Notes under the pieces: generated by a model
Databases searched by the model: none
What the model was told of the DNA's origin: nothing
Seen by the model: the letters and a program-made list of their open reading frames with translations, nothing else
NCBI GenBank assembly: GCA_965112735.1
Contig: OZ218965.1
Location: 620,001 to 684,000, forward strand
DNA: 64,000 nucleotides
DNA from: Phaeosaccion multiseriatum
Lineage: Eukaryota > Protista > Ochrophyta, other classes
Direction: 5' to 3'
Made by a program: the position numbers and the translations under genes
Shown here: in pieces, positions 14,945-20,220 of the stretch
Layout of the letters: each line of letters begins with the position of its first letter
How positions within the stretch are numbered: position 1 is the first letter of the stretch

Positions 14945-15949
14945 ATGGAAGGGGGCGACCTAGGGGATGAACTCCTCTATGAAGCTTGTCACGAGACCTT
15001 GGCAAAGCCCGAGCTCTTCCGTGTTATCTTGGGGTGCTTGGGGAGCGGGCACTTCTGCTTCGTGGCGGGTGTGTGCGAGGAGTGGAAGAACCGCTACACC
15101 GACAGATATCCAGCAGCGAAGACGAACTTCTCGACTGTGGTCAGCTCCGTGGAGTGTCTAAACTGGGCGACCAGTAGGCAGGGCCTTGAATTAAGTGATG
15201 AGCTCTTCAACGCTGCTGTGGGGGATGGAAATGTAGAGGTATGCGTGGCACTCCATGACAAGGGCTGTGCATTTATGGACTATGGAACGTACACTGAAGC
15301 CACGTTCAACAAAGAGCATGGTCTGGCTGTGCTCCAGTGGCTGCGCTCGGAGGACCTCCCTGGCAAGGAAGAGTGCCCGTGGGACGAGAGCATCTCTTCC
15401 ATATGTCAAGACGCCGCAGCGGTGGGGAACTTGGAGATACTCAAGTGGCTGATGTCGGACGAGGTCGGTGCAGAAATGGATTCCGACTCGTGGACCTCCG
15501 CCTGTATGGGTGGGGGCACCCCAGTCCTGGAATGGTTGCTCGAGCATCCTTCCACGAGAGCCTTGCTGGAAGAGAATGAAGACGGCCAATGGCGCAAGGG
15601 TATCCTTAAAGTAGCTGGGAGTGGCGATCTGGACGCACTGCAGCTCCTCTACGCGAAAGCTCGGGACCTCTTTGATTGGGGCGCTGATGTCTGCTTCATC
15701 GCAGTTATGAAAGGAGCGGTCCTTGCAGCCATTAAGGGAGACAGCCTCGCCATGCTGAAATGGCTCCGATCAGAGGAAGTGCAGTGCGACTGGGACGAAA
15801 GGTCTTGCCCACAAGTCATCAGAGACAGAGGTTTATATCCAGAGTGGGAATGGGATGAAACCGCGGTATGGGATATCGAGGCCGAGACCTTTGAGGAGGT
15901 GAAGCAATGGGTGCACTCGAACGGCCACCCCTGCGACTGCCAGGACTGA
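14945..15949 (+). CDS. Intronless ankyrin-repeat-like protein (CPWDE-type repeats, F-box-like N-terminus)
   Basis: 334-aa single ORF with ILGCLGSGHFCFVAGVCEEW and repeated AA..G.LE.LKWL...C.WDE units. Confidence 0.8.
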   Translation: MEGGDLGDELLYEACHETLAKPELFRVILGCLGSGHFCFVAGVCEEWKNRYTDRYPAAKTNFSTVVSSVECLNWATSRQGLELSDELFNAAVGDGNVEVCVALHDKGCAFMDYGTYTEATFNKEHGLAVLQWLRSEDLPGKEECPWDESISSICQDAAAVGNLEILKWLMSDEVGAEMDSDSWTSACMGGGTPVLEWLLEHPSTRALLEENEDGQWRKGILKVAGSGDLDALQLLYAKARDLFDWGADVCFIAVMKGAVLAAIKGDSLAMLKWLRSEEVQCDWDERSCPQVIRDRGLYPEWEWDETAVWDIEAETFEEVKQWVHSNGHPCDCQD

Positions 15950-16209
15950 GGATGAGGTGCTGGCGCGGAGAGAGATACGGGACAAGAATAGCACGAAGCT
16001 GTATTTAGTGGGGCAGACAGAAGGCGCTGAGACATGTGCTTGGTTCTCTGCGAGGGGCGGCTGTCTTGGACTCTGGGGCAGAAGAATATCGGCTTCCTGG
16101 CTTCCCGCCGCCCTCTGGCAGAAGGACTGTGAAGCACTACTAACGTAACACATGAGTAGGGAACAAGGAGTACAAGGAGTCAAGTCATAATTATACTTGA
16201 CTCTTCTAT

Positions 16210-19200
16210 CTATGCCTTGCCGCTTGGGTACGTCGCCTCGGAGAAAACCTGTGGGAGGGGGGCCAGGCGGGAGGGGGGGAAGCAGCACGTGTCAACAAGT
16301 GCTCTCTCGATGCGGGCTCAATCCCCCACGCACTAACGCACGCACCACGCACCCGTTTGTCGTGATCCGGACACAATATGGTGAGCTTATTGCACGCTAC
16401 GATGAGGTCGGGGAGAGACTTGTACTGGCGGGGCCCGTCGTTGAGCGTCAGGTACAGAAGCTCGTTCTCCAGCTTCACCTGGGGGGCAACCAGCAGCAGC
16501 AGCAGCACAGCACAACACGAGTGCCATCAGACTACTGTGGCGGGCGGGCGAGGTGACACGATGGTCTTGAACGGACCCTCACCACCGGCGCCTGTCTCTT
16601 AGCAATAACTAACCCCTTTCCTTGGTGCTGTGCCCATTGCCAACCCTCTTGACTTCCGTGCCTCTTGCTGCTGGAGCACTGACCGCCCACTGACTGACCA
16701 CTCACCACCACGTGCGTGACGAGCCTCCGAGTGATGCCCGGCTGCCCGTTTCGGACGCTTTCGTTGTACGAAATGACCAGGCTGCCTGGCTCGCTCTCTG
16801 AGAAGCGCAGAAGGAATGCTCCCATCGGCTTGCCCAGCAGCTGTGCGGTATGGTGACACACGAGACGGCGACTTGACCTTAGAAAACTTGGAACAGAGCT
16901 CATCTTCCCGTATGCATCAACAAATCATGCCGGACGTACCAGTTCCTCAGCTCTGGTCCTGCCCATGAAGCCGTGTATTAGTACGAGGGTGAAGTTCCAC
17001 TCGGCTTCGAGGAAGCGCAGCAGCTTCAATGTGGGCCCCCACCACCTGACGGAGAGAGAGGCGCAGAGCGGGGGGGGGGGCGAAGGTTGCAAAGGTTCAT
17101 CTCACCTCTCGCCCAATGGACCAACCACACACACATACACACACTCTCTCTCTCTCTCTCTCTCTCACCGTCCAAAGAGCACAAAGACATCGCGCGAGAT
17201 CTCCTCGGCGTCCACTGGCGGCCCGACGGCTTGCTTCCCTGCCAGTACCCACAGTCTGCGCCAAAGGTACGCACTGTCCTCCGGGTACAGGCCTCGGGGT
17301 GTGTGCTCCGAGAAGGGGGAGTACAGTTCATCCACCCCCGACCCGTCTCCTTTACACGTGCATATTTGGCTCTCGAGTGCCCTCTTCAGGGACTCCCACG
17401 TGACTGCATCCGTCCGGACCCCTCCTGTCGCTCGAGCCCAAGCCTGTTTAGAAAGCTCATTTGGCAACCCTGCTAGATGGGCTTCACTCCCAGTCTCATC
17501 TTGAGGCCCCTCGCTCCCTGCAGCCGAACTGCGGCTGCTAGTGCTGGAGTCCAAATCGCAAGGCAGGTAGCTCGCTCGTATTGCCTTGGCCTTGCTCACC
17601 ATTGCCTGAGAGTGCAGCGTGTGCGCCGCGAGAGCGTGCACCAGCTGGAGGAGTGTGCCGGGATGTCCCTCGCACACCTGAATAGCAGGCAGCTGCCCCA
17701 TCGGTACGAAGCACTGCTCCATCGTCTGCACACTCTCGTCGTTCTCGCTCACAGCAAGCTCCTCCTTGGACAGCCCCCTCGGCCTATGTAAGTATAGCAG
17801 CTGCGCGCACTCGGTGTCCGTGAGCCTCCGAGTGCTTAGCACCTTCTCCTTAAAGTTAATGAAGTGCTGCAGTGCGTTGGGAACTTGAGTCAAGCGCTCC
17901 TGACAAGTGCTCAGCACCACGAGGTTGTTGTTGAGAGTGAGCATTTCGTTGAGCGTGTTCACCACGGCCCCCATCATCTCCTTCTTGTGGGCTGCCTTGA
18001 CTCCTTCCGTGAGCGTGTCTACTCCGTCCAGCACGAGCAGCACCTTCCCCTCCACAGTGTCTCCCACCCTGTCGCTCACTCGCTCCAGAAAAAGGTACTC
18101 CAGCAGCTCCCTTGCTGCCCAGCGCTCGGAATTGTCAGCGCCCTCCTCAGCCACCAAGCTACCGCCGCTTTTGTTCAGAGCGGTCTTGAGCAGAGAAAAC
18201 AAGTTCTTGTCGCGCAGAATGTCGTCCTTGATGAGACTGGTGCAGTGAGCGGCCACGTCTACGAAGAAAATGTTTTCGAACTGCCTCCGCATGAGGACGT
18301 AAGAGCACGCCATGATGGCCTGCAGCGTCTTGCCCGACGCTCTGCCGCCCGTGATGGTCACACAGCTAGACGAGCAAATCCCCTCCACCACGCGCTGAAT
18401 GTCGAGTGCCGCCGTATCTCCGACCACTTCTCGACTCACAGGGAGGTTATACTTGTAAGGCAAAGGCTTGGTTTGGTCGTTGAAGGCCCCATCACGCAAG
18501 CCGCCGTGAGGAAACACTACGACGTTGTGGTCCACCCAGTCCTGAGGAGCGGAAAGGGCGAGTTGGAATCTGAAGGCTGCAGGTGTACAGCCCCCCAGCC
18601 TGCCTTCTCCCTCCCATGACTCTCTCCATATCTCTCCTCTGTGCCTCTCCCCTCCCATGAATCGCACCGGCTCCTCCTATCCCTCCTCTCACTCTCTCCC
18701 TCTCTCACCGGCATTAGGAGGAATTTATTCCCCTCCACGTCTGGGCGGGTCTTTTTGTCACACATTAGGCAAGAGATGGCGGCCTCGAAAGACCCTGTAA
18801 CTGTGAGGCCCTCCAAGAGGGCTGTGCACGAGAGGAGAGGAAAGGGAAACTCAAATCAGCCGCTCAGACACAGAGGAGAGGAAGGAGGATACACCGTGCA
18901 GTCTTACCCGAGTAGAAGCTGCTTGCGAAGGCCGTCGCGGCCATGTCTGTCACCGCGTCTTTGGTCTTGACAGCGACCACGTGCTTGACGCCCGCGGCGA
19001 CGAACCTCTCCCCTGCTGCTTGCGAATGGCAAGCGCTTACAAACACAACAGAGGTCACCACCCCTCCCGCCCGGAAAAGGCGGCCGAGGTCATCGGCGTT
19101 CATCTCCAGCAGCATCCCGCACTTGTCCTTCTCCCCGTCGCCCTGTTCGAAGGCCAGCATGTTTGTCTCGGGGAAGCCGTGCCCACTGTAGTGAAGCATT

Positions 19201-19969
19201 GTGCAGCCTTTGTTCAGCAGTCTTCTGAACCTCTCCGGGGTGGCAATCTCCGCCTGAAAAGTCACCTTCTTCCCTGTTTCTTTGATGGCAGAGCGGATAG
19301 CCTTGAGCTCCCCTTCAATGGCCAGGGTGGGGAGCGCCTCTCTTTTCCGCGCACCGGGAGGAACCCAGGCCAAAGGGGAGGCCGAGATGTAGCCCAGCCG
19401 GACCTGAACAAAGACGGGCAAGCAGCGGGCATGAGGAGAGAGAAGCCAGCAAGCCTTGCTGAGATGTGTACTTGAGCCTATGGGCTCGGTATTCGGGCGC
19501 TTGACATGAGTGCGAAGTGGGGGGATGTGTATATGGTGAAAGGCGTTTTAGAGTCGGGGGGCGTAGTGAAGAAAGCTCAGGAAGAAAGCTCTGGAAGAAA
19601 GCTCTAAAGCGGGACGTGGATGGAAGGTTGGGTGGGATGGTGGAGAGGGCAAATTAAGAGGAGGGAGGACGTGATTGGAGGGTAGGAGGTGAGTGGAACA
19701 TGGGAGGTAAGAGGCATTGGCGAAGAGTAGGTTTGGAGGGAGGAGTGGAGCAATTAGAGGGTGGCTGGTGGGGGAGGGGGAGGTGGGCGTGGCTTGGTGA
19801 AGGTGAGCGTGGTAGCCTGAGGAAGGTGGTGGAGACGGGAGGGTGGGGTGGGGCAGGACGATCGGAAGGGGCGGCCGTAGCGAGACAAGACACTCACCAC
19901 AGGGTCATGTTGGGACAGTGCCTCCCTGGAAGGCGGGCGCGGCAGCGTCGAGTCGTCTCTCGTCGTCAT
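16210..19969 (-). CDS. CHAT (caspase-like) protease - STAND P-loop NTPase - STAT-type linker-SH2 fusion protein, about 8 exons
   Basis: LHYSGHG and VFVSACHS (CHAT dyad); Walker A GGRASGKT, Walker B VLLVLDGVD and GHP motif; RGLYPEDSAYL..WW..EW..IHGFMGR..LLGKPMGAFLLRFSESEPGSLVISY. Exons join in frame through GT-AG introns. First exon is less certain. Confidence 0.85.
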
Positions 19970-20220
19970 GGCAGGAGGCAGCCCCCCCTCCCCGTTCCGT
20001 CTTCTCCTTCTCAAAGAGGAACGCCTCCTCTAACAGGGAGGGAAAGGGGCCTCGTCCTTCTCTTCAACCTATCATGAGCAGCCAGAGTCTTCTGAGATAG
20101 GCTTTGTCACACAGGGGGATATCGCATGGGGAATGATATAGAAGGGAGAGGGAGGGGCGAATATGTGGAACTTCAAATTGACTCTCTCTCTCCCTCTCTC
20201 TCTTATAAATTTCCTTGTGA

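Follow-up and report, generated by a model that had tools for sequence, protein, structure and literature searches.

A conserved ochrophyte protein family joining a CHAT protease domain and a STAND-type NTPase to a STAT-type linker-SH2 module, with a possible role as a phosphotyrosine-gated switch

Within a 64,000-nucleotide stretch of the Phaeosaccion multiseriatum genome (assembly GCA_965112735.1, contig OZ218965.1, positions 620,001 to 684,000; hereafter the window, whose own numbering is used throughout), the minus strand between 19969 and 16210 appears to bring together a CHAT protease domain, a STAND-type nucleoside triphosphatase (NTPase) and the linker and SH2 domain of a STAT protein. 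Does this locus encode a single protein, and could such a protein act as a phosphotyrosine-sensing switch, as the original prediction proposed from the letters of the sequence? To the first question we answer yes with high confidence: the locus is very probably one intact gene for an 819-residue cytosolic protein, belonging to an ochrophyte family that is conserved and always ordered as CHAT, STAND-type NTPase, variable disordered spacer and complete STAT-type linker plus SH2. The core of this family is most similar to prokaryotic CHAT-STAND-TPR proteins, and the linker-SH2 sits at the position of their repeat sensor. To the second, a phosphotyrosine-gated switch in the style of Apaf-1 and the NLRs is the best explanation overall, and we give it an even chance of being right.

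The gene runs from an ATG at 19969 to a TAG stop at 16212-16210 through eight exons, free of stop codons and joined in frame across seven GT..AG introns of 86-494 nucleotides. Within the 819 residues the order is CHAT (25-227), a P-loop STAND-type NTPase made up of a nucleotide-binding domain (NBD) and helical domain 1 (HD1; about 255-545), a disordered spacer (about 555-576, as delimited by the low-confidence stretch of the structure model) and STAT linker plus SH2 (596-812). Every motif quoted in the original prediction was found at its place on this strand. The spliced protein is colinear with full-length relatives across all three regions, matching P0003 with an E value of 8e-82 and P0017 of Ectocarpus sp. 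4 with one of 3e-81. In P0003 and P0009 the identical layout is encoded by single uninterrupted open reading frames (ORFs) on metagenome contigs; the fusion is therefore independent of any splicing assumption, and the three modules do, as had been proposed, share one polypeptide. Transcript-level evidence from a relative is provided by P0027, a complete MMETSP transcript of the chrysophyte Paraphysomonas. When the spliced protein was searched against the 64-kb window with tblastn, no second copy was found and the gene itself was the only match.

Might the model instead be an artefact that draws its CHAT, NTPase and SH2 from two or more neighbouring genes, or be a decaying pseudogene? The gene has no transcript support, as the four public runs covering the locus are DNA-like (99% of genomic words), and the contigs from those runs are colinear with the genome, introns included, with no splice joints. 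The one-gene case therefore rests on the relatives. Exon 1 (19898..19969), a short N-terminal leader of residues 1-24, is the weakest part of the model; it opens with an ATG, its GTGAGT donor keeps the phase of exon 2, and its size fits that of the relatives, in which 10-25 residues precede the first CHAT strand. In some metagenome contigs, moreover, a CHAT part of about 290 residues and an NTPase-SH2 part of about 640-690 residues are called separately (P0045 with P0049, and P0050 with P0052). Such split calls are nevertheless what one would expect of a prokaryotic gene caller meeting an intron. The two members of each pair share the same longest-contig value in the search table, and the cut probably reflects an intron where intron 3 of the window's gene sits. 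Against an artefact also stand the junctions themselves, which are in frame, have canonical sites and, for 2/3, 3/4, 4/5, 5/6, 6/7 and 7/8, all fall in gap-free columns of the alignment with intronless full-length relatives, with no stops in the exons between them. We therefore regard an artefact or pseudogene as extremely unlikely.

The CHAT domain is encoded by exon 2 (18908..19403, residues 25-189) and exon 3 (18709..18821, residues 190-227), the latter supplying its C-terminal helices, ending in a conserved KFLLxP and aligning without gaps to intronless relatives at both junctions. The exon-2 reading frame scores 41.2 bits with Pfam CHAT (PF12770), for which the cut-off is 24 (E 1.7e-10), and both of the catalytic residues that had been proposed are present, His99 within HYSGHG (19193-19176) and Cys149 within SACHS (19037-19023). 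This dyad is kept, in well-conserved motifs, by the window protein and by most members of the family. With a profile of the family's CHAT domains, the closest solved CHAT by sequence is that of SAVED-CHAT from a type III CRISPR system (8tl0; E 3.8e-14), a bacterial protein that differs from the algal one in carrying a SAVED sensor for cyclic oligoadenylate and no NTPase. In SAVED-CHAT the protease is switched on by ligand-driven stacking.

Exon 4 (17169..18541, residues 228-684) encodes the NBD, HD1, the low-complexity spacer and most of the STAT linker, which begins at about residue 596. The prediction of a STAND-type P-loop NTPase here is supported by conserved motifs, by the family profile and by the modelled fold. 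Walker A reads GGRASGKT (18349-18326, with Lys298) and Walker B reads VLLVLDGVD (18043-18017, with Asp399); both conform to the expected patterns, GxxxxGK[ST] and hhhhD with a further acidic residue, and both are conserved in the family. A Walker B of the form hhhhD-G/N-x-D is NACHT-like. In HD1 the GxP motif CEGHP (17674-17660) opens the segment CEGHPGTLL, which aligns with a nearly invariant G[HN]P of the family and, in the profile match, with the GSP of Apaf-1. Indeed, when the middle-region family profile was compared with PDB sequences, Apaf-1 came first (2.1e-6), followed by AfsR and NLRP1, and several relatives exceed the Pfam NACHT cut-off (P0009 at 48.1 bits, P0003 at 36.2 and P0014 at 35.7). 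An AlphaFold (AF2) model of the window's own exon 4, with a predicted local distance difference test score (pLDDT) of 76 and a predicted template modelling score (pTM) of 0.63, has an NBD-HD1 fold shared with apoptosome and resistosome NTPases at Z 14-15 (VIA-align; CED-4 15.2, NRC3 15.2, Apaf-1 14.6, ZAR1 14.2, and also NRC4). The scores of ORC/Cdc6 and other AAA+ folds are only slightly lower, and the fold alone cannot split STAND from its sister clades. Some of the CED-4 and NRC structural alignments extend into the linker helices, but the match of that region to the STAT linker covers its whole length.

The remaining exons complete the C-terminal module. Exon 5 (16940..17045, residues 685-720) supplies the final helix of the linker, WWGPTLKLLRFLEAEW, and opens the SH2 domain with IHGF (16978-16967) and the alphaA Arg714. 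Exon 6 (16706..16840, residues 721-765) holds the SH2 core, with FLLRFSES (16816-16793) containing the betaB5 Arg732, and the betaD His763. The C-terminal half of a STAT-type SH2 follows in exon 7 (16353..16478, residues 766-807), where the LYPxIPKEEAF end of the relatives reads LCPDHDKR, and exon 8 (16210..16248, residues 808-819) adds the short tail VFSEATYPSGKA and the TAG stop. The exon-6 reading frame matches Pfam SH2 (PF00017) at 25.6 bits against a cut-off of 21 (E 1.3e-5), and exon 6 alone matches the SH2 domains of SHP2 and STAT6 in a phmmer search of PDB sequences. All three residues of the phosphotyrosine pocket are intact, and across the family the betaB5 Arg, the betaD His and the alphaA Arg/Lys are invariant.

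That the module is a STAT linker plus SH2, rather than an SH2 domain in isolation, is supported by both sequence and structure. A profile of the relatives' C-termini, searched against the PDB, matched Dictyostelium STATa first (1uur; 4e-17) and then STAT6, 5, 2, 3 and 1, in alignments that begin well before the SH2 and reach into the linker; that with STAT6 spans the LYPxIPKEEAF motif, and most relatives keep this STAT-like end. The window protein, left out when the linker-SH2 profile was built from its relatives, matches it over residues 596-812 with an E value of 1.1e-36. For the fold we modelled the relative P0003 (residues 714-944) rather than the window protein with AlphaFold (pLDDT 87.5, pTM 0.83), and this model aligns over its full ordered length with the linker and SH2 of STAT1, 3, 5 and 6 and Dictyostelium STATa (Z 14-17.8; for example, STAT1 465-683). 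The top 30 structural matches of this module are all STATs; plain SH2 domains score no higher than Z 12.9 and align with the SH2 part only. These results, together with the invariant Arg732, confirm the earlier assignment of the C-terminus to a STAT linker and SH2 with its phosphotyrosine-binding arginine.

The likeness to metazoan STAT1-6 and Dictyostelium STATa thus extends to the complete linker-SH2 unit, the GxFLLRFSES motif and the LYPxIPKEEAF-like end, and it stops there. Residues 1-590 consist of CHAT, NTPase and spacer, with no STAT N-domain, coiled coil or Ig-like DNA-binding domain found, and Pfam returned no STAT_alpha, STAT_bind or STAT_int in any family member. The module is instead mounted on a protease-NTPase. 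The window protein is therefore not a STAT, since it has neither the DNA-binding half nor a conserved tail tyrosine. As a feature of the family, dimerisation through a STAT-like tail tyrosine was considered and rejected; Tyr814 of the window protein is not conserved in the relatives. For the window protein itself one might still imagine that Tyr814, in ATYPSG, becomes phosphorylated and is recognised by the SH2 domain of another copy, so that reciprocal dimers or chains bring the CHAT domains together. The STAT type of the SH2 and the position of this tyrosine, five residues from the C-terminus, would suit such self-association, but most relatives end soon after a KEDAF motif with no tyrosine at the aligned position, and we consider it very unlikely.

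How widespread is this architecture, and what is it related to? Searched with HMMER against 1.84 billion representatives, exon 4 returned only 16 proteins, the best of them 29% identical; the family is therefore small and fast-evolving. In Pfam, CHAT followed by NACHT or AAA_16 and then SH2 was found in P0003, P0005, P0009, P0012 and P0017 of Ectocarpus sp. 4, relatives in which matches to CHAT, NACHT and SH2 attain the cut-off or exceed it, and a profile search of 5.8 billion proteins added further CHAT, NACHT and SH2 members, including a Nannochloropsis oceanica protein titled "sh2 domain containing protein" in one record. With members in Ectocarpus, Nannochloropsis and Paraphysomonas, the uncharacterised stramenopile homologues that had been guessed at do exist. 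Their sequences are not new, being already in public databases as hypothetical proteins. In the literature that we searched on CHAT, NACHT, STAND, SH2 or STAT proteins of stramenopiles or algae we found no description of the layout, which may nonetheless be listed in an earlier SH2 survey; it goes unmentioned in the brown-algal genome paper and in the eLife STAND survey. The ESM Atlas holds no cluster of at least 50 members with this architecture, and its nearest clusters are bacterial CHAT-AAA_16/NB-ARC proteins.

The relatives of the CHAT-NTPase core with other C-termini are informative about the place of the SH2. They carry TPR arrays (P0033-40, and P0048 from a Chloroflexi metagenome-assembled genome) or LRRs (P0059 and P0062), and in oomycete core relatives from Pythium and Achlya no C-terminal domain was recognised. 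Two of the TPR forms, P0033 and P0035, are prokaryotic, as their neighbours are UvrB, UvrC, HicB and MtrH genes. Outside the family, its profile matches these prokaryotic CHAT-STAND(NACHT/NB-ARC)-TPR proteins, P0048 among them, most strongly (E 1e-134 to 1e-98). Like the family, they begin with a CHAT domain that has the dyad, continue directly with a P-loop NBD and HD1, and keep the order of effector, NTPase and C-terminal module; they differ in bearing a TPR array where the family has the STAT linker-SH2, and are themselves uncharacterised. A quick, unrooted maximum-likelihood tree of the CHAT-NBD-HD1 core, with a number of long branches, places the window protein and the Ectocarpus sp. 4 protein as sisters (Shimodaira-Hasegawa-like approximate likelihood ratio test 98). 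The SH2-bearing proteins cluster, with 5 label changes as compared to 14.7 for shuffled labels, and the forms with TPRs or LRRs lie in a separate clade. Two proteins labelled "other" within the SH2 clade, P0028 and P0044, have a cryptic or truncated linker-SH2. This comparison supports the proposal that the SH2 stands in for a repeat sensor, for it occupies the position at which the nearest core relatives carry TPRs or LRRs. We would best describe the window protein as one of an uncharacterised family of ochrophyte proteins that combine a CHAT-STAND core of prokaryotic type with a STAT linker-SH2 cassette.

By analogy, the window protein may work like a tripartite switch of the Apaf-1/NLR type. 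In Apaf-1 and CED-4 apoptosomes and in NLR inflammasomes and resistosomes, a STAND NTPase likewise links a sensor with a death effector, be it a caspase-clan protease or another, and the family resembles them in its NBD-HD1 fold and in a sequence profile that matches Apaf-1 and NLRP1. The differences are equally clear: the algal protease is fused in cis as CHAT, whereas theirs is brought in by way of CARD; an SH2 takes the place of WD40 or LRR at the sensor position; no winged-helix domain (WHD) or helical domain 2 is recognisable; and assembly of the algal protein is putative. Pfam found no C-terminal LRR, WD40 or TPR repeats in the window protein, which is therefore not an NLR, as it has no repeat sensor. 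In the mechanism that we propose, the SH2 pocket would bind a phosphotyrosine mark on a partner protein. The kinase behind this mark would be tyrosine-kinase-like (TKL), dual-specificity or one of the rare tyrosine kinases. Its recognition would release or concentrate the protein, allowing the NTPase to multimerise in a nucleotide-dependent manner, and the N-terminal CHAT domains, activated by proximity, would cleave substrates, with stress, immune or cell-death signalling as the output. Such a switch would be gated by phosphorylation instead of by the ligand of a repeat domain. The ligand-driven stacking of SAVED-CHAT offers a further parallel to this scheme. Tyrosine phosphorylation is plausible in stramenopiles; a study of the Phytophthora kinome reports two putative tyrosine kinases and many TKLs, along with four SH2 proteins (PMC3019232). 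Taken as a whole, this sequence from phosphotyrosine binding through NTPase multimerisation to proximity activation of CHAT is possible, and we place its chances somewhat below even.

A number of observations weigh against a switch of this kind. The first concerns the protease. The original prediction stated that Walker and dyad residues unconserved in orthologues would speak against it, and in part they do: the Walker A and B motifs, the GxP motif and the phosphotyrosine pocket are conserved there, whereas the dyad is not always so. In Nannochloropsis (P0029-P0031 and P0140) the motifs read HYTGIG and SARHS, so that both residues are lost (His to Ile and Cys to Arg), and in Ectocarpus sp. 4 (P0017) HFAGQG replaces the His with Gln. 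Proteolysis is therefore not the universal output of the family. These orthologues keep the NTPase motifs, the SH2 pocket and the rest of the CHAT fold, and from their motifs we read them as natural pseudo-protease forms. They lend some weight to a non-proteolytic alternative, in which the protein is a scaffold or regulator that assembles via its NTPase and SH2, with CHAT serving as an interaction surface or a decoy in the manner of pseudo-caspases and the protease being dispensable or vestigial even in P. multiseriatum. However, the window protein and most members retain both catalytic residues, which argues for selection on catalysis in them. A scaffold role is real for the orthologues without the dyad and less likely for the window copy, and as a general account of the locus we judge it to be clearly unlikely.

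The second concerns the coupling of sensor to NTPase. The layout predicted for the middle region stands as far as the NBD-HD1 fold, which was modelled, and not beyond it, as no canonical WHD was found by sequence between HD1 and the linker in any member; in every member HD1 leads instead into a low-complexity spacer, whose length varies from 10 to about 200 residues, and then into the STAT linker. The STAND module is thus short and atypical, and without a WHD the ADP-locked closed state that is usual for STAND proteins may therefore not apply. Pfam, moreover, places the window protein alone below threshold in this region: the 500-residue middle reading frame scores 20.6 against 27.2 for nSTAND3 (3.8e-4) and 13.2 against 26.7 for NACHT (0.079), and AAA_16 is sub-threshold too. 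The phosphotyrosine ligand, the kinase and the substrate of the family are all putative, PADLOC and NCBIfam returned no informative matches that would give a functional link, and the window protein lies on a long branch of 1.41 changes per site. The lack of transcripts described above belongs on the same side.

These features of the middle region bear on the main rival to a phosphotyrosine-gated switch, namely that the SH2 is a recruitment module. It would only dock the protein on phosphotyrosine-marked complexes such as phosphorylated receptor-like kinases, much as STATs and SHP2 dock at receptors; the NTPase would answer another cue, and binding of phosphotyrosine would not of itself set off assembly. 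A long, variable, disordered spacer between HD1 and linker suits a tethered docking module more than a packed autoinhibitory sensor, there is no WHD to couple a sensor with the nucleotide pocket, and the phosphotyrosine pocket is conserved. Set against this, TPR and LRR repeats, the usual STAND sensors, hold the very same position in the nearest relatives, and the 819 residues contain no other candidate sensor domain. We accordingly rate recruitment as rather unlikely, and retain the phosphotyrosine-gated switch as the better explanation.

What would such a switch mean? Known STAND and NLR switches sense through LRR, WD40, TPR or one of a few other domains, and stramenopiles are thought to be poor in dedicated tyrosine-kinase machinery. 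A phosphotyrosine reader at the sensor position was not found described in the literature that we searched. If the mechanism is correct, a kinase signal would act straight on a caspase-like protease in a lineage only distantly related to animals, and phosphotyrosine signalling would feed a caspase-clan death or immune protease directly outside animals and amoebozoans. The STAT linker-SH2 unit, too, would have circulated as an independent mobile module that is not peculiar to STAT transcription factors. A complete STAT linker-SH2 in stramenopiles without a DNA-binding domain is relevant to how STATs and SH2 signalling arose, and the gene plainly illustrates the union of a prokaryote-type conflict module with a eukaryotic reader domain. 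The fullest version of this proposal, that ochrophytes possess a phosphotyrosine-gated, apoptosome-like protease switch built from a prokaryote-derived CHAT-STAND fused to a eukaryotic STAT linker-SH2, is put forward tentatively, as less likely than not. The algae concerned are ecologically important, and their immunity and cell-death pathways are poorly known. Both Nannochloropsis and Ectocarpus have genetic tools, which make the question testable.

Several minor features of the locus were recorded alongside the gene. On the plus strand at 14945-15949, converging on the 3' end of the CHAT-STAND-SH2 gene, lies a single-exon ORF of 334 residues with ankyrin repeats (Pfam Ank_4, 3.1e-7), for which no functional link to that gene is evident. 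At 15920-15950 a motif of about 30 nucleotides lies under many short high-depth contigs, at up to about 2.5 times the local depth; the apparent joint from 15950 to 18686 in two runs, with only 21 nucleotides on one side, is probably a short dispersed repeat and no real deletion. Intron 4 (17046-17168) holds a homopolymer run of C besides microsatellites of (GA)n and (GT)n. It is here, at 17118-17175 (repeat-flagged), that the public contigs break, and loose ends at 17028 go into poly-G; the stretch is a weak spot for assemblies, outside the exons. Intron 1 (19404-19897) is strongly C-rich on the coding strand, with a plus-strand GC skew of +0.50 over 19500-19999; its composition produces long proline-rich pseudo-ORFs on both strands, and we read the region as non-coding intron and 5' sequence.

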